From contig DF237009.1 in assembly GCA_000708835.1 (NCBI GenBank), positions 1 through 64,000 on the forward strand: a stretch of DNA of 64,000 nt, written 5' to 3'. Position 1 is the stretch's first letter; every line of letters begins with the position of its first letter. This document shows positions 4,739 to 44,900 of this stretch, piece after piece. Under the pieces are notes generated by a model. That model saw only the letters and a program-made list of their open reading frames with translations. It had not been told where the DNA came from and searched no databases. A program made the translations under genes and the position numbers. This DNA comes from Klebsormidium nitens. Its lineage: Eukaryota > Plantae > Klebsormidiophyceae.

Positions 4739-5798
4739 GACGGAAAAATATAGCGAACACGTTTTCGGTGTTCCTGGCTAAGTAATATTCAGATATTAAG
4801 ATGAGTATAATTGCTGACATACACGATGACAGAAGGAGAAACCTCGAAGCAGCTCAAAGTTGCGCCGGGTTGCATTGCCGTCCAAATCTGTTTCCCAATC
4901 ACAAAGAATAGCTTGATAATTCCTAAGTAACCCTCGGCCGATCTTCGCATGGACCGTACGTGATTAATGATTGCGATACTCTGGCTCACAATGTCCATGC
5001 ACAGATCCTGGAAGCCATTGGACACGCTGCACGGCAATGATTGACTGCCGCGAGCTGCACCATGCGCCGAAGCATGGAATTAAGAACGCCGGAGGTCAAT
5101 GCGTTAAAGGCACTTTCGATCATCCTACATAGAGTGACGGTGCATGGCCCGCCCTTTGATTGGCGGCCGGGGACACGTGTGAAGCAATTCCGTCTGAATC
5201 ACCTCAATATGGCGATCGTGTTTATATCCTCCTGCGCGTTAATGCATGTAGGTCTTTATCGGAGGCGTTTCTCTGAAGATCTCGCGTTGAATCTGCACAT
5301 CACGCTTGACGCCCATGTAGGGGTCGGGGGGCTCAATCATGGCGGATGTCAAATTTTGCAGGGCAACACTATCGTCATGATCGGAACCCAAAATTTTAGC
5401 ACACAGTGTCTCTAATCGTATCTAGCTCTTCGTTGATTGCAAAAAGTTGCTAGAAGAGCCGCCAACGTGTAGCGGCTTCAAATGAGCAGCAAGAGGCTCA
5501 ATATGCTCCGCTTACAATGTTGAATCAAGCGGTCCAGAGCGAATCATCTTATAAGCGTGCCAACGTTGGCTTCGTCGACAAGTGAGTAACCACAAGCGAG
5601 CTCATAGGTCAAGAAAGCAGTCCACGGGGAACATGGTGGCCGGGTATCATTCATCTCAAAGCGCCAAGCTTTGTCCAGATTCCAGCCATCCAACCACGTG
5701 GCCGTTTTGCAAACGCGTCTTGAGTACATCCCACTTTGAAAAATGCCTACCTAGCCCAACTACCTTTAACGGAAGAATGTTGTACAAGCGACGTGGCT

Positions 5799-8700
5799 TC
5801 ACTTAGACTCAGCAGCGCCCGCCGCCACTGGGGCGGGCATCGCCATCGCCTTCGTGGCAACGGCAGAGGCCGACTCTAGCGTCCGTTGTTTCTTGACGAC
5901 GTTGAATGCTTGTATCGTGTCCCCTACCGCCCACTCATTAAACCCGGAGACGTTCGCCCCGCACTCGTTGCCTTGCTCGACCTGCGACAGTTTCAGACAC
6001 AGCGAGTCAGGCAATCGATCCTCAACTGGAAGAAGTCGTTCACACCTTCGCAAGTGTGCTGTGACCGTCCGTCAAAACTAATCTTAAGATTGACCAAAAG
6101 TCCCCTGTGCTTATTTCCAAGAAAGTAGAGCTGGATCTTTGAATTCTACAGTTGTCTAATGCTTCGCAACAACAGAATAGGTCCCTCAATATTTTGAGAC
6201 CCCTTGAATCAAAGCGGCAGACAGCAAGGTCAACATTCCGCTCTGAAACCGTCCCAATCTGCAAAATAAACCCCAACAACAACCAAGTCCTTTCGTCCCT
6301 TAAACCCCTCTCGTAGAACTTTGACTCCAAACCCCTGACCCAAATGAACACCCTCACCTGTTTTGCCAACTCCTTGACCCGCCGCAAACTGTCCAGCTTT
6401 CCGAAGTAGACCTCCTTCTTCTTCCGGATCACCGCAATCGTGCAACCCTTAACTAGCTTTCCCTCCGTCACGATGCATCCGGCCGCCTTACCACTCCCGG
6501 CGGGGAACACGGCCTTCACTTCGGCAGTCCCAATGGGAATGCGCTCCTGCAGGAGATTGAACTTCATTGTCAGACGCGCATACGAGATACAGAGGTTAAA
6601 TTTAGTTGATTCGTCAGACGGGCATACGATAGTTGTACGATTGCTGTGCGAGAAGTGCGAGGGGCTATTTAAACGACCAATCGCACAGGCGTGCACGAGG
6701 CGTGTACGAGCTGGAAGGGTCGCCAACCGGTTGGCGAGGTGATGAAAAGAAGAGACTTGGAACTTTAGCATTGAGGCAGCACGACCGTGTGCAGTGTGCA
6801 CTTAATGTAATCGCAACTAGGCGAGCGTTTTTCTGTGGAGCGTGAAGCAGCAGTAGACTTTTTTGGCATTGTTGTGGGGTGAGGGGGTGAATCCCACGGA
6901 GATCGTTCACCGGATTGCGCGAGACTCTTCTGGTTCCGACTAAACTGTATCGCCTTCTCAAACGACAGGCTTGGACATCAGTGAACGCTCTCAACTTGCA
7001 TCAAAACGAAATCAACGTCAGAGACTCAGAATCACGTTCAAACAGGATCACCGAACAAGGGATGAACATTGCCGCACCTCCTCCGGTTCCATCATCCCCT
7101 CCATCGCCTTCCGAATATCGTCTACCAGATCGTAGATGACGTTGTACTGCTTCACCTCAATGCCCGTCTCCTTAGAGTGCGCTTCGGCGGCCGGCGGCAC
7201 CTGTCCGAGGCACGCTCTGAGCCGTCAGATGCCGCCTCTGGACGGTCCCGAAAGCATGTCGATGCGTTCGAGGGCCCCATTCAAATGTCTCTTCAATTTA
7301 GCAATAGTAAGGGCAAGCAATAGTAAGCTCCAATACTAACACTAAAACCTAACCTATAAAATCACCCGCTCCGCACCCGAACCCACCCTAACCCCCAAAA
7401 TAACCCTACCCGTCCCAGGCTGGTGAGCTTACTATTGCTAAAGCTTACTATTGCTAAGTTGAAGATTCTTCCCATTCAAGGGCAGCAACCAGCTCCGCGT
7501 TCACGAAACGCCTCTCTCAAGTGCATATGCAAAGCTCCCTGATGTAGGAGAGCGCCATTTTCTACTTCCTTAGATAGAAGATTCTCGGAACACGCCCACT
7601 GGCTAACAGGAGGAGCGTTGTGCGGAATTGGGTCCAAGGCCTGTCCTCAACCAATATGCAGAGTCCGGGCTAACAAGCGCGACTCCTTGTGCGGATTCCG
7701 GCTCGACAGAATAGCTGCCAAAGTTGCTTTCGTTCGAAAAGGCGCGTCCCCCTTACCTGCACGTTGAAGCCGAGCACGACCGCCTCGCTCGCCTGCGCTA
7801 GGTCGATGTCGCTTATGCTCACGTCACCGGTCATCGACAGCAGGAAGCGCAATCCGATCGTGTCCTGCGGCAACGCCTGCAGAAGGAAAGGACGTGGAGA
7901 GTGTTGTACCGCCACCTCAAAATTTGGACTCTGCAAGCACCAACAGCTCGTGCAATTCCCTTTACTTTCTGAACACAAAGCAGCAACAAAAGGAGGCGAG
8001 AGACTTGTCACCAGGACCAGACACACTCTTAAATTACGCACGAGATAGCTTAGGAGAAAAGCAAAAAAAATGCCACGGAAATGCACGACGAGCAGACGAA
8101 ACCCAAGCGGCAGCGCTCGATGCCGCGAGTCCCTTACTCTTAAGCCCAACGTTACCAAATTCCAGCAACTCAGACATCCCATCCCCTCGCCTCCAAGAGC
8201 TCTCTCAAGTCGCTTCCGCATCATCCCTGCCACATCACCCCTCAAACTTCCAGGACAGCCGTCGCCCCAAATCTAAGAAACACTGTCTGTCTGAAATCCT
8301 ACAAAAAAACCAAAAGCTCACCTCCAAAGCACTCCGGATCGCCTCCGCCGAGCCCGCCACGTCGACCTTCAGGATCAGGTTCAGCCGCCCAAACTCGAGC
8401 CCCTCCTCCGCGACCGCGGCTGCTGCCGCCAGCGATTGTAAAGTGATTTTGCCCTCGCCGGCCAGGTTAGCCAACCGCTGCGTCCGCTGTGTATACCCGC
8501 GCTCCTCCGCTTTTGAGCGAGCATCGTCTAGGTCGGGCCGGATCTCGAACACTTCACCCGCCGCAGGGACGCCGCTCAGGCCCATCACCTGGAAAGCACA
8601 AGCGTGTGTGTATGTCAATCTGTTCACTCTGCTGTGTCTCAGTTCAAAGGCGGGTGAGTCGCTTATCGGGATGCAACTAAAAGGTTTGTTGGGACGCAGA

Positions 8701-11700
8701 CTTGAAGAGCTCACCCGCCGCAGGAACGCCGCTCAGGCCCATCACCTGATACGAGATGGCGGGAGCACGTCCTTATAGGCCGAAAGCGTATGTTTCGTGA
8801 GATCGTGAATGCAAGGCGGAAATTCGATTCTTGGATGTTACAAACGAAATCAAGAAGAGACGGATAAACAGTTCACCCGCCGCAGGAACGCCGCTCAGGC
8901 CCATCACCTGAAAAGAGCACGCGTCTGTATATGTCGGACGCTCATTCAATCGTCGTGGCTTGACTGCGCATATCCATTCCCAGACAATACAATGAGACAA
9001 TACAATGAGACAATACGATCAAAGTCGGTAACAACTTGAAGAGCGCGCCAACAATGTGGAACTCTGAACAGGCCGACAGAGAAATAGGCACAGTAAACTC
9101 AGACACTGGTCCTGTCGAAGGAATCATCGATTTGAACGGACTCGATCCGAACCATCTCGTGTCCTTCGTCCTTGATTTCCGAGCCTGTCCCCGCACCAAC
9201 TTCTCACCTCATTCCCAAAATCTTCCAAGCCTTTCCTTTTTACGAGAAACTGTTAGCTCCCCAAAAACTTCCAAGCCTTTCCTTGTTACAAGAAACTGTT
9301 AGCTCCCATTTCTCCAACCTCTCACTTGATTCCCAAAGCATTCGAGCCTTTATTTTCTGGATTTTCACTTCATTCTCGGAACCTCCAAGCCTTTCGTTTT
9401 CCCCGAAATCTTTCCCAACTCCCAAGTTCCAAAAGATTCAAAAGACTAAGAGATTGCAGAACCCGCTCACCTGCACCGCCTCTGACGGCCCCGCCTCCTT
9501 CAGGCTCTTCCCCGTGTGGTCCAGCAACGCCCGCACCTTCCCGAACGCGTCCCCGCACAGCATGACGTCACCCCGCCGCAGCGTCCCGCACTGCACCACC
9601 ACCGTCGCGAGCGGGCCGCGCTTGCGATCCAGCGTCGCCTCGATGACCGTGCCCTTCGCCTCACGGTCCGGGTTCGCTGAGAACTCGGACACCTGTCCGA
9701 AAGTGGAAAAGATGGTTAAAAGTGTCCCGAATTTGTCCGAAAATTGTCCGAAAGTTGTCCGAAAGTTCTCCACAGCTTCGGAAACATGGTTAACCTGTCC
9801 GAAAACGAAGATAGATAACCGGTCCAGCGTTGCCTCGATCATTGTGCCCTTGGCCTCACGGTCCGACTTCATCAAGAACTCGGACACCTGTTCGGTTGTC
9901 GAGGAGATGGATTGATCTGTCCAATAGTTGAAAAACATGGACCTCTATTCAAGAATTGAGATAGACAAGCTATCCAGCGTCGCCTCAATCACCGTGCCCT
10001 TGGCCTCAAGGTCCGGATCGCAGATAGATTCGCCGACAACTCGGACACCTGTCCGAGAGTCACGAAGGTGGTTGACTTGTTCGAAACGTCAAAAAGATGG
10101 TTGACCTGTTCGAAAGTTAAGGTAGATATCCTGTCAAGCGTCGCCTCAATCACTGTGCTTTTGCCCTCGCGGTCTGGGCTCCCCAAGAACTCGGTTACAT
10201 AACCGAAAGTTGCAAAGGAAGTCGTTACGTGGTATCCGGACCCTTCAGAGAGACCCGAAGGACGGAGAGGAGATCAGGTTGAGCGCAAAACCACATGCTT
10301 AGATACAAGATAAACTGCGAGCTCAAGACTTATGACGAGCAATGCTCTATCTAACTAGTTTGCACACGTCCGCGATCGTCCGGGAATCACACCTCACCAA
10401 CGACAGCGACTCACAGCAACGGTGCACTAAAGACGAACAGAGAGGTTGTGAATGACCTCACCTCTGCAACTAGCATGATGGCCTCCAGTATTCACAGAAA
10501 AAACAATCCTAAGATAGAGAAGTCTTTCTCATATTTGAGAGCTCCCCGAACCCGACAAAGACGGTGTGAACGCCTTCACCTCCGCAACTAGCATGATGGC
10601 CTCCAGTGATCAGTGGGAAATAATTTCCTAGGATAGAGAAGCGTTCTTCGTGAACCCCGGAACTCGAACAACGAAGGTGTGAATGCCCTCACCTCCGCAA
10701 CTAGCATGATGGCCTCCAGCAGCTCGTCGACCCCGGTCCCCTTCTTCGCACTAACGGGCACCATCGCCACGTCACCACCCCACTCCTCGGGGTACAGCTG
10801 CGCCTGCGCCGACAGCTCCTGCAAACGCCACGTGGCTTGTGAGCAACGCATGTTTCATATCAAGTCGTCTTCTCCGGCTTTTCTCCGCATCTGTTTGGGC
10901 GTCGCAGCGTTCTTGCAGCCGTTATTGGGGCCCTCCCAATGACCGACTGACATTCCTAAGGGCTTTATTAGGGCGGGTTCCAATCGACAAACACAAGTCC
11001 CTCCGAATCTGAAATCTCCTGTTGTGTCCAAAGGATACATGCGTCCAGCTTAACGCAGCTTGAAGCTCCAGAAAACTCTACAGTGTTTAAGGCTCTGCTT
11101 TATTCACAAACCCGCTTCTTGCATACCGAATCTCCGACCTGAACAATGTCCAACCTCTGGAGTCAACGCCTGCCGAGGGTTTCGTAAGAAGGAAAGATCT
11201 TCGTAAGAAGGAACAACACTCCCCGAACACTGGAACCCTTCACCCCGACGCCCCTGCATGCCGCCTCACCTACGCGATCTCTCTGCCGGAATCGCTGAAA
11301 ACCAGGAAAGCTCTCAAAAGGCCCAATAAACGCCGAGCACGCATGAACCCCAAAACTTTCGGAGTGGACACCCCTGCAATCCCCTGAAAAGAAATGCAAA
11401 CCCTTGGGGTAACGCACTGCAAACCCTCCTCACCTGCATGACCTTCTCCACGCTCGCCCCGTCCTTGTCCACCTTGTTGATCGCCACCACGATCGGCACC
11501 TCCGCCGCCTTGGCGTGCGAGATCGCCTCCAGCGTCTGCGGCCGAACGCCGTCGTCCGCCGCAACCACAATAACGGCGATGTCCGTCACTTTCGCGCCCC
11601 GGGCGCGCATCGCGGAGAAGGCCTCGTGGCCCGGGGTGTCGAGGAACACGCACGTGTGCGTCTCGCCCTCCACCTCGACGGGGACGCGGTACGCGCCGAT

Positions 11701-21452: not shown

Positions 21453-24400
21453 TCACGGATCCGGAGGCACGACGAACTTTTCGAAGTCCGCACCAAGTGA
21501 CGGTGACGGTTTTCTCACGCGTACCAACTCCATTATCTGTACGGTCAAGTCAAGCAACTCCTCGTCCCAGCCACGTGGCCCGATGATCCCGAGGCCCACG
21601 GGACAGCCGTCCACTTCAGCAATGGGGAGGTTTACCTGACAGGAGCGAAAAAGCGTTTGATTGTGACTGCGAAGCCGGCTTGAGGAAGCTAAATTCAAAA
21701 GCTACATTCTGCCTAAGTTGGATCTGGGTTCTTAAGGGAGGTGGAAAAGCAAAATCCGACCAGGAGGAAAGATCAACGGACGGTGACGGACCGAGCAGAC
21801 CGGAAAGAAGGCAGGCAGATAGGCAAGTATTCGAATGATTCGCGATGCAAAGCCGCCTTGAAAGAAGGATTAGAAGAAGGCTACATCTTGCCTCTATTCT
21901 GGATTGAATGAAAGCTGGAGAAGCAGGGCCGAGCAAAACGAATGTGAGATCAGCGGCCTTCACAATCGACCCGAGCACCGGGTAAGAGGCAGACAGACAG
22001 GCAAGCATCCGGTCGTACTCCCTTGAAACGTCAAGAACGAAATCACGGTTGTTTTCGACTTCGTCATTTCAAGATAGTGGCGTCATCCGGTCCGCTCACC
22101 TGCGGCAAACCGGACGGCCCCGCGATGACGGACAGCTGCAGAATGCGGCTCCGGTACGCCTCTAGTTCTTCTGCGTGCGCTTTTTTCAAGGGGGCGATGC
22201 CCGGGGCGCTGGGCACCATCAGGACGGCGCCGTCCGCGAGCAGCGTCCGCATGTGGTCCGAGAACCTGCGCCGTCCAGAGAAGGGCGCTGGTGCGTATGG
22301 GGAAGTTGTTCGAAAGTTGAGACTTGATCTGTTCCACTGACCGACGGAGCAAACCTTTTGTCTTTGGAAATTTCTTGCGCGCCAACCTTTCCTTCGTCGC
22401 CGTCGCCTCCCGCCACAGCCTTTCGGACACTTCGGACGGTCACGGATAGATAGTCCGGATGACGCTTTCCTGACGCCAGTATTTGAAAGATGCTTTGGAC
22501 TGGGAACTTTGGGGCGCCCACCTTTTCCTCGCTGCTGTCGCCTCTCGCCACTGCTCCTCGGCGCTTCGGACGGTCACGAATAGATAGTCCGGACGACGCT
22601 TTCCTAACGCGTAACGGTCCCCGCCAATATTTGAAACATGCTTTTGACTGGGATCTTTGGGGCGCCCCCCTTTTCCTCGCTGTTGTCGCCTCTCGCCACT
22701 GCTCGGACAAGTCGGACGGTATATATATTGTGCGGACGATGCTTTCCGTCCGCCAATACAAGTAATTCTGCTTTAAGTGGGCTCTCTGGGCGCCCACCTT
22801 TCCCTGGCAGCCGTCGCTTCCCGCCACTGCTCCTCGGACACTTCGGACGCGGCCGCAAAGCGTTCCCGGACGCCCGGGCCCAGCTTCGGGTCCTCCGTCC
22901 GAATCCACTCCCCGTGCTGCTGCCAGGCCTCGTACAGCTGCGGGAGAGCCATTGTGTGGGGGCGAAGCACAGTTGTTGAGGAGCAGGGTCGGTCAAACAG
23001 GGCCCCCGCTTAGACTACCGCAGACTTTCTTCCTCATTGTTTGTCAACATCTTCGATTAATCGCTCTCCATTTACAAATGGGAAGTGAATGTACGGGATC
23101 CAATACTGAAGCAACAGTAAAGCCAAGTGCGGGTGCCCTTCCGTCTCTGTCAGATGCCTCAAAGATGCTTGGAACATGGGAAAAAACTGCAGACGTGTTC
23201 TTGGCGCGTCCTGTCTTCCCCAAATCTTCCCATACCATGGCTCCTATTTTCAGTTCAGTTTGAAGAGTTATCTTTGAGGTCGAAGTTGCTAACCTCTGCC
23301 ATTGGCCCACTTAAGCGAACTTCTCATGGCGCATTCCATTCATCTCTTCTCGGCGCTTGTTAAGGCTTTCTGCGCTCTGTTACGTGGAGGAAAAGTTGCA
23401 GGTCTTCAGTTGTCCGTTCGTTTCTCATTCTCAAGCTCCCCTGAACGCTCGGCAGAAATCTCAAAAACACTCGGACCCCCAACGTACAGCTCACCTGTAT
23501 CGTCCGTGCGTGCTCCATCCACTTTGCCAAGCCCCCCTCTTCCGTCGCTACCGTAATCTCCTCCGGAGAACTCAGCATCTCGCAAAGCGCGCTCATATGC
23601 GGCAACAGTTCGTCGTAGATTGCCTTCGCAGCTGCTTCGTCTGCCAGTGTGAATGCGTCCGTGGCTACCAGCCACCGTTTCAGCTTCCGTTCCGGCCGGG
23701 GCTTTCCGTTGCCTGACGTTCCGGCCGGAGAGCTTGTAGGTTCCGCCGAGTTCCGCTCCTCCAGTAGGCACGTTCCGCTCAGGAGGACCTCTCCGACGGA
23801 ACGGAAGATGTGGGGGTCATTTGCGAACCAGCCAACTAGAAGGAGAAGTGAAGTAAGGTGAGGAAGCAAAAGAAAACGAGGCGCAGAATGTGGATCGTAA
23901 CGGATATTGTAGAGCCTTTTACGAGGTGCATTGGAGGGTCCCTTTCTTGGAACTTCGCTGTGTCGAGCTGGAATGATCTATACACCTGGGACGTTTCACC
24001 GAGCACCGTCGTCCTCGTTTTGTGCAAGTAAACCAGCAAAGGCGACTTTGACACTACTTGCTGGCTTACTCGTCAGAGCTCAGCTTTCACACCGGTTACC
24101 ACAAAAAATTGGAGAAGGCAGAGCGGCACAAAATTTCCACAACTATCGCAGAACGTGGTTCAAATCACGTTCTGTTCTTCAGAAATCTCAAAAGAGTAAG
24201 AAGCTTCTATGAACATTGCGTCTGAAAACCGACAATTGTCAGAGACTCAGCCGCCTCGCAAGCTCCCCGTCGGCGTTGACCAATCTCACAGAGTTCGAGG
24301 AAGAACGTGCATCGTACCTGCATCTAGAGTAGGCTGGAGGGGTCGCGCCCCTTCCATCGAAATACGCCCATGGCTCGGCCGCATTCCCAGGACGCCGCAG

Positions 24401-26614: not shown

Positions 26615-29600
26615 ATGCAGGCGGAAGACGGGCCTGAAAACCTGAGCATCTACAAGCTCTCGAGGCTGATCAAGCGGGAGCAGAACGACTTGTACAACAG
26701 CCTGCGAAGCATCTATGCGGATTCTCTCTTTGTTTCAGAGATCCGCAGGCAAGTCTAAACTCTCTCTTTAATCTTCAACGCATTTGCAATATAACTTCTA
26801 AGGTGGCTGAAGATCTCGTCTGTGCTGTCAACCGGTTACATCTTCAATAGGTGAACAACGATGTGACTTCAGGAACCAGGTACTTTGTAGGCCTCATTCT
26901 CAACCAAGCCAATCATTTCACCACTTTTCACTGCAAATCTCTAGAGTTGGCCATCCGGTGTGATCTTCAGTATATGATGCAGTATCATACTGCACCACCG
27001 CATACATTTAAACGGTCAAAGTATAAGTTGATAAGTCGTCTATCCAGATGGTGATCATCAGAAATGTCAGCGGCAAGCTCCAAGCTCATTGTATGAACCA
27101 TTTGCCTGCACCACCCTGTCGCACAATCTCCTTTAAACAAAGCCTATCTTGTTTGGCAGGGGTATCAGCTTGAAGGTTTCAGGCTGTGTAAAAGCCTTCA
27201 GCTCTTTCATTTTCTTTTTCACGAACATCAGCGCTGTAGCTCTAGAACGACTTCTGACTGTCGGCCCTTAGAACGACGTCTCTCCCTCCGTCACGAGCGT
27301 CTCTAAGTTCTGCACCAATAGCCAAATGCAAGACTTTTCGCTGTTTGGCAGGCTCTACCCCTCCTTGCCCCTCCTCGCCAACCTACGCTGCGGCATCTGG
27401 TACTCCCCCCACTTCGACGGGAGCTGCTACTTCAAGTCCACAGATGGCCACACCGGCAACTGGTCTTTCAGCTGCACGCGCCTCAACATCCACGTGGCAG
27501 AGCTCGCTGCACGGCATGGGGGGTGCATAATCGTGGACGCAACTCGGAGGGGAAAGAGGTATCCGGATAGCTTATCAAAGACTGTCCCAATATGGTGCTG
27601 CGTTCTCAACCGAGCTCTTGAGGAGATCAGGAGAGAGGAAGGGAGGGGAAGCGAAGCAAAGGCGGGTCCAAAGGGCTTAGCAGAAAGGGGTTTGATTAGA
27701 GAAAGTGGAGAGAGTGAGGAACTGAGGAGAGATACTGGGGGCCGGAGGAGGAGTTTGAGGGAAGATGAAGGAGGGGTGCGAAGCCAAAATGATGAAAGTG
27801 GGGGCCAAAGCGAAGCAAATGAATCAGCGGCGGCTGGTTTCGTTGTCAGCCTGGGCGGGCCCGCGACTACTAATACAGATAGAGACAGGTGCCTTCAGTT
27901 TGGAAGTCAACAGGATAATTCACGGGGGAGGGGGCAGGATCACAAGAAGCAACAAGATGACGCCGGTGAAGACGTCAGCTTGGCTGTCCTTTCCGATAAG
28001 AATCTCGAGGGGAGTGAGCTGGAAGCAGGGTCGGAGGGTGGAATCGCTTCTGGGGCAGTTGAAACGGAGACCGAAACGGGGGAAGAGGCAGAGAAGGTCG
28101 AGGACTGGATGACGTTGCGCCTGCCACTGTGGCTGTCCCCAACCGAAAAGGCGGCGATCGAGAGTCGGGTTGAGGGATGGGTCGAAATCTTGAAAGTGAG
28201 CCGACTGGTTTTCTGCGACGTATACTTGATTGTGCTGGTTTCCATGGTTGCTCGCTTGTACTGTGGCTACCCAGCTGTGGCCGCAGCCACGAGATTGGTG
28301 GCGTTAAAGTCCAACACTGCAGCTGAAAATCTAGCCCGTCAAGGCCCAACCCACAGAACCACTTTCTTCCACCTTCGAATCCTCGTGATCTCAATGACTA
28401 CGAACCTGCGCAGTGGAAAAGTCTGGTTGAGATCCCACACAATTGTGAAGGATTGTTTAAAGTTCGCGAATAAGATTTCGCGAATAAGAGTCCTTGAGAT
28501 CAGGATCCCTAAACCCCAAAACGTCCTGCAGACCTCCGGCGCCGACCTCCGCCCCCTCGCCGGCGCCCTGCGCAAGCCGCTGCGCCCGCTGTGGGTCTCG
28601 CAGCGCACAGTCATCTGGCTCAACGAGGTCGCTGACGTCAGCACGCTGCCCTTCACGCCCGTCATCTGCCTGTCGTCGTCAGACCCGGTGGCACTTCCTG
28701 GCCACGTGGCAGGGGGGGGCTCCGGTTGGAGCTATGTTCCTGGGGCGGGGGACGACGAGGAAAGCTGGTCTCGAGTGAGCGGACTACGTCTGACTTGTAT
28801 CTTTGAATCGACAGAAGATACAAGGCTATCCCGTTTGAGTCGTTGGTAGACACAATTGTCTGCGTTTTGTTGCTTCTGAGTCGCCAGGTGGATCGAATCT
28901 CGGGTTGTTGCTTTTTGAACCGTTGGCGTGTAAGAGCAGCTCGTATTGGGAGCTTCGGAATCGGGAAGCTGCGCCAAAGTGGGTCTACCCTAAAGAAGGA
29001 CGCAAAGGCTTTTCGTGTTCGGGAGCAGATGCCAACGGTGTACAGCGTTCGGGGAACTGGTGACTGGGTCAACGTTTCCTTGGACAGCCGGAATTGCAAT
29101 CAGAAAAATAAAGACTTATAGGATAGGACTGCACTTGCACTCGTATCTCCATGATTGCGCTCAAAGAGGAAGACTCCCGTTCCGCAGGGCCTCAGTCCGG
29201 CGGCATTCTGGCGGAACGTCCACCACATCCTCGACGCGGGGCCGTCCGGATGCAAGGGTGCCGTGGCGCGCCTGGTCGAGGAAGAGCGCGTGCGTGTGGC
29301 GCTGCGCAGCACGGGATTCGGGCCGGTGGCGGAATCCGCGCGAGAGGGTCACCGAGCGGAACGGAAGCTGGACGGAACGGGTGGGGAGAGAGTGCCGGAC
29401 GGCTCGCACGGAGATCCGTACGGAGGGAACAGCATAGGAAGGGAAGGCAGGGAAGGGACGAGAAGAGTTCCGGACCGGAAGAATGGAGTGGCTGGAACGG
29501 AAGAATCTACTGGCGAGGTGGAGAGGCTCTCCGATGAGCCAGGTGGGCGCTCGACAGAGGCGTCGAGAAATGAAAGGGCAGCGCCATCGGTCCGAGGGGA

Positions 29601-34842: not shown

Positions 34843-39983
<5,141 letters not shown>

Positions 39984-40525: not shown

Positions 40526-41291
40526 ACGCACAAGCAACCTATGGTGGGTATCGGCGGTCTCGATCGCGCGACGATCCGGTCACAAATTTGAATCACCGGT
40601 GTGTCGAGTCGCGACAATTACTGTACGCGGTACTGACGACCGTGCAGACCGGTACTTGAGAATCCGGTCCGAGTTCATAAATTAGAATCTGTCTGACAAG
40701 CCGATCGTCAGAAACTTCCGGAGTTTCCGGCGGTACGGTACCGATCAAGTCTGACCGTACGTGAAATTTGAAAATCATGGTTTCGATCGGAAGTTCCGAC
40801 TCGAACCACCCTAGAGTACCGCGGTACCTAACTTGAAAGGAGAGTGCAGAAGATGGAAACGGGAGTGTAGGGAATGGCGCTTTTTAGAAGCAAGCAATGG
40901 CGGCCAACTTTGCAGCCACGATGGTGCTTCTTCCGATTTGTCCTCAACATAACAAGATGTTGGAGCTTCGAAGGAGCCTTCATGACGCTCTCCCAACATT
41001 TTTTTCTGCTTGTCAGAGGTTTTTATAAGCTGCATATGGCTCTTCTTTGCGTGCCAATTTGATGCTCCTCTCAAAGTGTAAAACCTGACACTGTCTAAGA
41101 ATCTCCTCACACTTACTTACGGCCCGGCAAAATTTTTCTGAGTATTTGTACCGCCCGAGTAACATAAACCTGAGTAGCCGTGACGCGAACCGCCGGTAAC
41201 ACTGACGATATTCGATACGCGCTAAATCGATTTTGTGGCGGCCGGAGTCGGAATCGACTCGGCCGGTACCCACCGTAGGTAGCTTGTGCGT
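40526..41291. repeat. Inverted-repeat-bounded segment, possibly a decayed TIR/fold-back element
   Basis: ACGCACAAGCAACCTATGGTGGGTATCGGC (40526-40555) matches the reverse complement of 41262-41291 at 27/30, with weaker similarity continuing inward. No TSD found. Confidence 0.55.
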
Positions 41292-41956: not shown

Positions 41957-44900
41957 TCAGCGGACGTTCAACCGCGCAAAGTCGTTCATCGTTTCCTGCT
42001 GGATGTTGGGGATCGGGTGCACGCTGCTGAGGTTGTGGTGGATGCTTGCAAACTTCTCTTGGAGCTTCTCGACCTGCAACGCGCAAGGACAACTATGTTA
42101 GAAACTGCAGGTACGCTGCTCCTTGCCGGGAACTAGGGATGGGGTACTGGAGATGAGGATGTTAGAGTGGCTACTTTGAATGGATGCCCAGAAGATTCTG
42201 ACGAAACAAGCAACGAAAAGCCGAGGATCACCAAAACCAAGAATAAAAGATAAGAACCGGTTCCACACGCTCACCCTACGCTCGTCCTTTTGCGCTTCAA
42301 CACGGCGCGCACTCAGCTTTCCGCCCAGTAGAGAACGGGGACAAATAAATTTTGAGACGAGGAATTGTACTAAAAAGAAAATTTGAGGCCCCATGCTTAC
42401 CCTGCGCAGCTCGTGTTCAAGCTTGTCCTTATGCGCCTCATGCGCGGCGCGCACCTGAAAATCTACCTTCCTCCGCGCGCTCTCCAAAAGGAAAGAATGT
42501 GAAAATCTGGGTCGAAGGATTGAGACACAGAAAGAACTTCGCGGCGTGCTCACCCTGCGCAGCTCGTGATCGAGCTCGTCCTTTTGCGCCTCGAGCGCGG
42601 CGCGCACGGTGCCGACGTCGAAGACGTTGTCGAGGTCCTCCTCGTAGGCGACCTCGAGGCGCTCCCGCAGCAGGCCGGGGAATCTGTCGATCATGGGCAT
42701 CAGGAAGAAGCAGTTGAACTGCGGAGAAAACAGGTTGACCAAGGGGGTTAGCTTGAGGAAATTACGGACATCAGCAGGAAGCAGTCATACTGCGGGGAAA
42801 CGGGTCAGCTTAGCACGGGGTTAGGAAACATCAGAAAGAAACAAGAAGTGCGGAACGCCGGTTATCGAAGGGGTTAGCTTGAGGAAGTTGGTGAGAAGGT
42901 TGGGCGTCGATCATGGGCACAAGGAAGAAGCAGCTGAATTGCGGGGTAACGGGTCTACCGAGTAAGCTGGTGAGTCGGTCAAGGGCCCCCAAGAGAGACT
43001 GAAGCCGAAAAGTTGAACGAGTCAATCTGCTTTAGAAACTCAGGGTGAGAGTCAATTAAGAGCAACATGAAGCAGCAGTCGAAGTACGGGAAGCAGGTCA
43101 ACGAACTAGAAGCCTGTCAACGGCGTGCCAGGGAGGAGACCACGGGGCAGGATGCGCAAGAGAAAAGCCGAAGAGCGTGGGAGTCCGCTCTTAAAACAGC
43201 GATGACGCCATGCTTTCTTGTACCTCATTACAGACACAGCGACCCGCTCTTCCTCAGACTACCTACTTACGCCTTCCAAGCGTTCCTTAATAAGAGAGTT
43301 CAACAGAGACGACGCTGTGGCGGAGTGCGGAGTAGTCTCGATTCTATGTTGAGTTAGGTCAGGCCCGGGGGACGGTTAGGGTTGGGTTGGGGGATTAGGG
43401 TGGGTACAGGTGCGGAGCATGTAACTTTGGGTTTAGGTTTTTAGTTAGTTTGCGCCCGGGATACTGATCTAACTCAACATACACCTAACCTCAACATAAA
43501 ATTGAGACTTATGGAGGTTCTCACCTTGAGCTCGGCAGACTGGACGAAGTAGTCGCGGATGCCTTGGAAGATCTGGGACACCAGCGCGTTCACGATGTCC
43601 TGCCAGTCGCACGCGAGCTGGGAAGAGAAGAGCGGGCGTCAGAAAGGAGCACCGGTACTTTGGAAGGGCTCGGACGACGACTGTAGGAAGCTTTGTTTGA
43701 GCTTCTAAAAGAACGATTGGTCACATGCGGGCAGAGATATAAGATGCTATGCTGTTCTGGACGAGTGGATGTCTGGTGGCATTGCTCATTTGCTGCAACA
43801 AAGACAAACTGAGACGGCCTCTTCACGAATCCTTCAGACACGCCCTAAATAGTCGGTTCTGATCTTCTCGTCACCTTCGACACGACGGCGTCACGCCTGA
43901 ACCCCTGAATCACTTACAAACCTGCTCCGTACATCTTTCCTTCAACGAACTTAAAGACACCTCCCCTTAATTTCCTTATAAGCACGTAATCATCTCTTTT
44001 CTTGGTTAGATACGGAGGTCTTTGCGTATCGAGCTTCAGAAAGAATTGACGGGTTCTGACCCCCTACCCCCTGCCCTAGTCTTCTCAAATTTACCCACAA
44101 TTCACTCAAAGTCAAGCCTCAAGTTTAACGTCTTGAAACCCATGACTCCCTCACCTCGGAGCTGGGCGCGAGCCGCCGGTTCCACAGCGTGCTCTCCAGG
44201 AGGTCCACCAGGCGCGCCTGGGACTGTTCTTTGCGGACGCTCTCGTCGGCGTCCGGCGCGGCCGGCTTGCGGACGGGCCGGACGTTCTCCTGCTGGTTGG
44301 AGATGTCGGCCAGGGGCTCCAGCACGGAAGCGGCCTTGTTGCTGCACATGTTGTCCAGGAACGCCCGCAGGCCGCCGCGGTTCTGGGGGAAGGAGGAAGG
44401 AACGGGGCCTTTTAGAAGGTAACTGGATGTCAATATGAGACTCGGCCCTTCACTTGGTTGATTGAGGATTGCTCTGTAACTGAGGCGCTTCTTTTATCTG
44501 GCAGAAAGGGTGTGTATTGCTCCGCCTTTCAGAGAGGCTTACTGTAGTCTAGCAGAAAGAAGTACGTCTGAAGGCGCGTACTCGAGGAACGTCGCGATGT
44601 GAACATGGAAGAAGGGGAGGAAAGAAGCACGCTTGGGAGCGTCGATCACACGGCATCCTCACCTTGTGGTGCAACGCCCACGTCACGTAGCGGGTCGTAC
44701 TGAGAAGGTCCTCCAAGCACCTGAAACAAAAAAAGATGCTTAAGAGCCGAGTCCTCGTACGTTATCCATAAAAAGCAAGCATTGCTGCTGTATAAATGGG
44801 GCTATCGGAGCTCAGAAAGCATAAAAAAGTCACAAATTCAAACGAGCAGAAAAGTTGGCCTGTCAGCGTACCAGCTTCAATAGGCCTCACTTCTCGCATA

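Follow-up and report, generated by a model that had tools for sequence, protein, structure and literature searches.

Introduction

The closest described systems to the elements reported here are the Mutator/Foldback transposons, which include Drosophila FB, Tm1 of root-knot nematodes and Arabidopsis FARE. Tm1, a Mutator/Foldback family of Meloidogyne, has 9-bp target site duplications (TSDs), asymmetric short outer motifs, 13–15-bp tandem sub-repeats in its terminal inverted repeats (TIRs) and members that resemble MITEs (miniature inverted-repeat transposable elements); in one of its groups, a conserved central motif, the histone hairpin, lies between the arms (PMC3169594). Here, we analyze the first 64 kb of scaffold DF237009.1 of Klebsormidium nitens (hereafter, the window), which is nuclear DNA of a charophyte green alga. 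Three small non-coding elements in it, designated A (7285–7470), B (43334–43509) and C (166–986), share a C/G-rich middle of about 50–90 nt, the core, and have unrelated inverted ends. These elements probably constitute a family of small, non-autonomous, MITE-like foldback DNA transposons of Mutator/Foldback-like type. No description of a core-sharing foldback family in Klebsormidium was found in the literature searched.

The comparison with known systems yields both likenesses and differences. Like Mutator/Foldback elements, the K. nitens elements have a 9-bp TSD, non-coding MITE-like members, and composite arms in which a short, partly asymmetric outer end is followed by a variable number of 12–15-nt tandem sub-repeats. 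Unlike them, they show no family-wide arm motifs: the arms of different K. nitens elements are unalignable, whereas the center is shared, and no Mutator- or Phantom-type transposase is tied to them. Plant MITEs of the Tourist, Stowaway and mPing types are likewise small and non-coding, with inverted repeats, a TSD and a location in gene introns, but the K. nitens elements have a 9-bp TSD in place of TA or TWA, long arms built of internal repeats, and a conserved center instead of conserved ends. Finally, the nested or tandem inverted-repeat units within the outer TIRs of element C may recall Mutator-like elements with multiple long TIRs (PMC3310237).

Results

One core recurs in three inverted-repeat elements

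A profile search of the window, with the profile built from the window copies themselves, returned exactly four copies of the core, at 600–700, 719–820, 7319–7423 and 43364–43465. These are spread over three inverted-repeat elements, with one copy in A, one in B and two in C (C1 and C2), and all four form the center of inverted repeats. The A and B cores are identical at 70 of 89 positions in a local alignment whose score of 73 was reached by none of 1000 shuffles, and the corresponding A–C1 score is 55. When core A was used as a single-sequence query, B was recovered at E = 3e-4 over 72 nt (18 bits) and C1 at E = 0.04 (11.6 bits). The initial annotation had described one core carried by three fold-back elements, and both the profile search and the pairwise scores confirm this recurrence. 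The 19-mer ACCCGAACCCACCCTAACC that it had reported as identical at 653–671 and 7375–7393 indeed matches at both places with 0 mismatches; the same 19-mer occurs with 2 mismatches at 772–790 and with 3 mismatches at 43393–43411 on the minus strand, and shuffled sequence contains no match to it.

The best-conserved part of the core is the 22-nt block CCGCACCCGnACCCACCCTnAC. Each K. nitens core also contains several C3 tracts and one or more copies of the heptamer AACCCTA, and no direct repeat flanks the core itself. On the strand opposite CCGCACCCGnACCCACCCTnAC, a canonical G-quadruplex (G4) motif, defined as (G3+ N1-7)x3 G3+, occurs in three cores (A, B and C2), and in C1 one G-tract is broken. 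Three of the four canonical G4 motifs in the window lie in cores, with 1.2 motifs expected for the whole window under a first-order Markov model. The earlier suggestion that the core might form a G-quadruplex therefore fits, at the level of a predicted motif.

Anatomy of elements A, B and C

Element A is a 186-bp foldback located inside the 552-nt intron (7201–7752) of a chloroplast-type IF-2 gene on the minus strand. Its left arm (7285–7330, plus orientation) starts with a 15-nt outer end, followed by the 12-mer AGCAATAGTAAG at 7300–7311 and again at 7316–7327, a 16-nt period; its right arm (7425–7470, minus orientation) carries the 12-mer at 7428–7439 and 7444–7455. The complete layout is a 15-nt end, AGCAATAGTAAG, a 4-nt spacer, AGCAATAGTAAG, 3 nt and a 94-nt core, and then the mirror image. 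The core (7331–7424) is C-rich on the plus strand, with its G4 motif on the minus strand at 7376–7416. All four 12-mers are perfect and occur nowhere else in the 64 kb. The spacers, GGCA in one arm and CTTT in the other, have none of their four positions in common, and three of the outermost 5 nt differ between the two arms. The inverted repeat measures 41–46 nt, with 7290–7330 pairing with 7425–7465 at 88%, and the single-stranded DNA of A folds at −30 kcal/mol, well beyond what shuffled sequences achieve (z = −7.3). The inverted repeat is directly abutted on both sides by a perfect 9/9 direct repeat, CCCATTCAA, at 7276–7284 and 7471–7479. Both features previously assigned to A, the inverted arms and the 9-bp TSD, are thus present.

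Element B, a 176-bp foldback at 43334–43509, is hosted by a minus-strand dynamin-like gene; the intron that contains it is some 800 nt long, with the 5′ splice site 15 nt away from the element. The left arm of B (43334–43362, plus orientation) consists of AGTCTCGATTC followed by TATGTTGAGTTAG once, and its right arm (43464–43509, minus orientation) carries this 13/14-mer twice, followed by AAATTGAGACT. The outer end is the 11-nt sequence AGTCTC(G/A)ATT(C/T), and the sub-repeat TATGTTGAGTTAG has a period of 16–17 nt. The unequal number of units, one on the left and two on the right, indicates that an individual arm can gain or lose sub-repeats. The 101-nt core (43363–43463, minus orientation) is G-rich on the plus strand and contains a G4 motif at 43367–43404. 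B is probably the oldest copy, given its uneven arms and a core more diverged than the others. Open reading frames (ORFs) that start inside A or B do not exceed 39 aa. In A, the G-rich strand of the core is the transcribed one and in B the C-rich strand; the two cores are oppositely oriented relative to their host genes, and the elements therefore have no consistent orientation to host genes.

Element C is an 821-bp composite foldback at 166–986, at the left end of the scaffold, bounded by outer TIRs of about 45 bp (166–210 and 946–986). It is flanked by the TSD AATGTCAA at 158–165 and 987–994, which is perfect over 8 bp and, read as a 9-bp duplication (GAATGTCAA and AAATGTCAA), matches at 8 of 9 positions. 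A sub-repeat array in plus orientation occupies 265–598, with 52–56-bp units containing CGGACCGACCGACCG at 265–459, an inverted copy at 471–497 and a direct copy at 562–598. It is followed by C1 (600–700) and C2 (719–820), both in plus orientation, which are a tandem duplication with a 119-bp period and carry a G4 motif on the minus strand at 773–804; an inverted sub-repeat at 813–835, in minus orientation, closes the inner foldback. C overlaps only spurious ORFs, none of which has a Pfam match. Two assignments of the initial annotation had to be revised here: CGGACCGACCG, taken for the arms of the left-end element, belongs to the sub-repeats of the 52–56-bp tandem array and its inverted copies, and the TSD AATGTCAA, attributed to the element with TATGTTGAGTTAG arms, flanks the outer 45-bp TIRs of C.

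Arms differ between elements, whereas the plan and the TSD agree

Within each of the three elements, the core lies between inverted arms whose match score was reached by none of 500 shuffles. Between elements, arm similarity does not exceed that of shuffled sequence (p ≥ 0.1 in all pairs), as had been proposed. The elements therefore do combine a conserved middle and unrelated arms, which turns the usual MITE pattern around. No arms are shared by two elements of the window, so the many copies with common TIRs by which MITEs are defined are not seen there. Shared outer ends of A and B (TCAATTT / GTCTC) were considered and rejected (p about 0.1), and so was a derivation of the arm units from the edge of the core, because their best matches to it are no better than those of shuffled units. 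The window contains no core-less element with any of the A, B or C arms, and Pfam scans of it revealed no transposase gene.

The TSDs, on the other hand, had been described as differing in length (9 bp vs. 8 bp). They agree instead, since that of A reads 9/9 and that of C 8/9 as a 9-bp duplication; these are the two readable TSDs, B having none. Both clean TSDs, AATGTCAA and CCCATTCAA, end in TCAA, which in two cases may reflect chance or a weak target preference. A common plan is also evident in all three elements: outer end, direct sub-repeats, core, inverted sub-repeats and outer end. In A and B, an 11–15-nt outer end precedes 12–13-nt sub-repeats with a 16-nt period, and C follows the same plan on a larger scale.

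Core similarity compared with telomere-like controls

A comparison of the core with CCCTAA-rich sequences had been suggested in the initial annotation. As controls, we used 22 metagenome contigs that hold the exact 19-mer ACCCGAACCCACCCTAACC and are degenerate CCCTAA arrays of unrelated marine eukaryotes. Despite their selection for an identical 19-mer, the best local score of these arrays against core A was 48, and in comparisons with the A, C1 or C2 core singly their bit scores did not exceed about 8. Because controls that hold the 19-mer reach only 48, compared with 73 for A and B, the similarity between the A and B cores is well above the telomere-like background. The A–C1 comparison (55; 11.6 bits) and that of A with the copy from a relative described below (49) lie only narrowly above the control arrays.

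The contigs were also considered as possible copies of the family and were rejected, all 22 being unrelated degenerate CCCTAA arrays. In these contigs (L001–L022), the 19-mer recurs in CCCTAA/CCCGAA hexamer arrays, often beside apparent coding regions. Searches of bacterial and archaeal genomes and of viral contigs with the core 22-mer gave only chance matches in high-GC bacteria, or nothing, and a protein search for further element copies, using an ORF that runs through the core, produced no candidates.

The K. nitens telomerase makes TTTTAGGG (PMC3622300), and a CCCTAAAA dimer, allowing up to 3 mismatches, occurs in none of the cores. The label "telomere-like" given to the core is therefore superficial: the core is not the K. 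nitens telomere unit. The AACCCTA heptamer and the C3 tracts are what the K. nitens cores have in common with interstitial telomeric repeats and the telo-box (AAACCCTAA); unlike these, the cores contain no array of TTTTAGGG (PMC3622300), and the relative's copy lacks the heptamer altogether.

Relatives and the host introns

The relatives compared were L027 (Logan SRR20627847), L024 (Logan SRR23617307) and the more distant L028 and L029 (Joint Genome Institute, JGI, metagenome 3300060284). Three orthologous IF-2 loci, in L027, L028 and L029, were found by a HMMER search with the ORF holding the exon beside the intron of A. In L027, the exons flanking the intron are 88% and 79% identical to those of K. 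nitens, and at exactly the same position lies a 599-nt intron that has neither core nor arms and is not alignable with the K. nitens intron. Since an intron exists at this position without core or arms, A is an insertion into a pre-existing intron. For the empty-site comparison proposed earlier, L027 provides the intron without the element, but this intron has diverged too far for the exact empty site of A to be read.

The IF-2 intron follows ...GFNVQ at a CAG|GT site in both K. nitens (7201–7752) and L027 (433–1031). In L028 and L029, the IF-2 protein reads through ...GFNVQVPPAADAH... without an intron (L028:9957-10207 and L029:9957-10207), a distribution that may reflect either gain in the Klebsormidium lineage or loss in the others.

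An assignment of A and B to the introner elements of algae and other protists was also examined and rejected. The likeness consists in short inverted-repeat elements with TSDs in housekeeping-gene introns of an alga; however, A makes up 186 of the 552 nt of an intron that exists without it in L027, the intron of B is about 800 nt long, and A and B, unlike introners, fill only part of their introns and supply no splice sites.

A candidate core homologue was found in L024, in a contig collinear with 58.8–64.0 kb of the window, whose coding parts are 76–83% identical (about 78%). The homologue, at L024:5543-5595, is identical to A at 42 of 53 positions (blastn E = 2e-6 in 89 kb; nhmmer E = 0.0025 against the core profile) and shares the 22-nt block. 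A second partial core lies 130 bp away, and weak arms at 5516–5540 and 5779–5803, which are 72% complementary, resemble no K. nitens arms. Judging from this match, which is good though not conclusive, the combination of the same core with other arms appears to hold in another species as well. In L024, the core seems to be about as well conserved as coding DNA, whereas the orthologous IF-2 intron of L027 does not align at all.

No core was found in 75 kb of the JGI relatives (L025, L026, L028 and L029). These relatives do contain near-perfect core-less foldback hairpins of 150–280 bp, at L028:694-954, L025:12343-12494 and L029:185-465, which indicates that foldback elements as such are common in this group.

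Other features of the window

Several genes contain tandem units of 115–195 bp, each of which repeats a 3′ splice site together with the first 10–15 codons of the exon (8460–8944, 9600–10233, 10437–10725, 22376–22849, 37186–37696 and 42394–43094). In the IF-2 gene, three tandem units begin with ...CAG|GTGATGGGCCTGAGCGGCGT; the real exon continues from the most downstream of them alone. The same kind of duplication, including a 3′ splice site, is found beside the core copy of the relative, at L024:5574-5837. The units may serve as decoy or alternative acceptors; they may also be what is left of a process of local duplication.

A further inverted repeat at 40526–41291, with 30-nt arms of the form ACGCACAAGC(A/T)ACCTA(T/C)GGTGGGTA(T/C)CGGC lying 766 bp apart, has no core and no obvious TSD, and may be another non-autonomous element. 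A Rit1-family ORF at 27326–28849 is 100% identical to a K. nitens protein, whose gene has the same coordinates on scaffold DF237009.1 (257,406 bp) as in the window. The window contains no tRNA and, at the gathering threshold, no Rfam family.

Discussion

The evidence is best accommodated, in our judgment, if A, B and C are a family of small, non-autonomous foldback transposons related to the Mutator/Foldback group, a reading that we hold with some confidence. The initial annotation had suggested that several transposon families reuse the core. This is not supported, as TSD, size and modular plan agree; a single superfamily, and probably a single family with diverged arms, is the simpler reading, because the readable TSDs fit 9 bp, A and B are of similar size (186 and 176 bp) and one modular plan is common to all. 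The core appears to be the constrained part of these elements, with arms that need only match each other.

Such elements would most likely move by cut-and-paste, relying on a transposase provided in trans whose cuts at the ends are staggered by 9 bp. Selection at the level of the family would keep the core, with its block CCGCACCCGnACCCACCCTnAC and the G4 motif on the other strand, while nothing but complementarity between the two arms of an element would constrain the arm sequence. Drift of the arms is probably fast and due to slippage of their sub-repeats, for which the uneven arms of B would be an example, and copying from one arm to the other may keep them complementary.

Several points weigh against this interpretation. 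Three elements of the window and one foreign copy are all that could be read. The foreign copy, in L024, spans just 53 nt of G/C-rich sequence and is therefore of moderate significance. Although typical of the Mutator/Foldback group, a 9-bp TSD is not exclusive to it, and for B no TSD of 7–11 bp with at most 1 mismatch was found within ±14 nt of its ends. The perfect 12-mers of A, set among differing spacers, look like protein-binding sites, a pattern that is ill suited to a purely structural role of the arms. They are awkward for a single transposase if the arm units vary from one element to another: the recognition proteins would have to change together with the arms.

Among the alternatives, one inverts the usual relationship between the ends and the interior of a transposon, and we consider it unlikely. 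It holds that the core is itself the mobility signal, whereas the ends need only self-complementarity and a set distance (elements of about 175–190 bp), so that the arms would be replaceable and the core would be kept even between species. In that case, the core might be bound by the transposase or by a host factor, or might fold into a G-quadruplex and thereby cause the hairpin to be extruded.

A second alternative, which is more doubtful, regards the core as a portable cis-module, either a protein-binding site or a G-quadruplex, that was captured independently by several unrelated transposon families. In its favor are the unalignable arms and the 45-bp outer TIRs of C, which differ from the ends of A and B. 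It is opposed by the fit of all readable TSDs to 9 bp, by the same size and arm plan of A and B, and by the lack of core-less elements with these arms in the window; moreover, the same 90 nt, always in a central position, would need to have been captured repeatedly.

It is very improbable that the elements are hairpin RNA genes, whether small-RNA precursors or structured RNAs with a conserved loop. Plant MITEs are known to give rise to hairpins that yield small RNAs, and the strong foldback potential of A would suit such a role. The loop, however, would be 94–101 nt long and unstructured, the cores have no Rfam (Rfam 15) match at either threshold, A and B are oppositely oriented with respect to their host genes, and the TSD shows that insertion took place as DNA.

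Marginally less credible still than the RNA explanation is the proposal of the initial annotation that the mobile unit is the core, around which local DNA is turned into inverted repeats upon insertion. In its favor, the arms vary between elements and match within one. However, the perfect 9-bp TSD of A lies outside the arms, from which it follows that the arms arrived with the element; the 12-mer of these arms is unique to A within the 64 kb, no direct repeat flanks the core, and the arm units have no significant similarity to their own core. The proposal is therefore unsupported.

A chance resemblance of C-rich, telomere-like, low-complexity DNA, which could appeal to the 19-mer shared with 22 unrelated marine contigs and to the 22-mer pattern matched in high-GC bacteria, has a negligible probability: it is excluded for A and B by the control scores (at most 48 and about 8 bits, compared with 73 and 18 bits), A vs. 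C1 and A vs. the relative's copy being just above the controls, and all four window copies are centered in inverted repeats.

If A, B and C do form one foldback transposon family with a kept core and free arms, they bear on how such families are found and how they move. MITE-finding tools rely on shared TIRs, and a family with a conserved center and free ends would be missed by them or split. The combination also raises the question of what the transposase must recognize. If the core is the recognition signal, this would be a new organization of a cut-and-paste element; if it is not, the elements would illustrate how rapidly foldback arms can evolve in concert. For the alga itself, because the elements occupy housekeeping-gene introns and account for most G4 motifs of the locality, they could affect the replication or transcription of their host genes.

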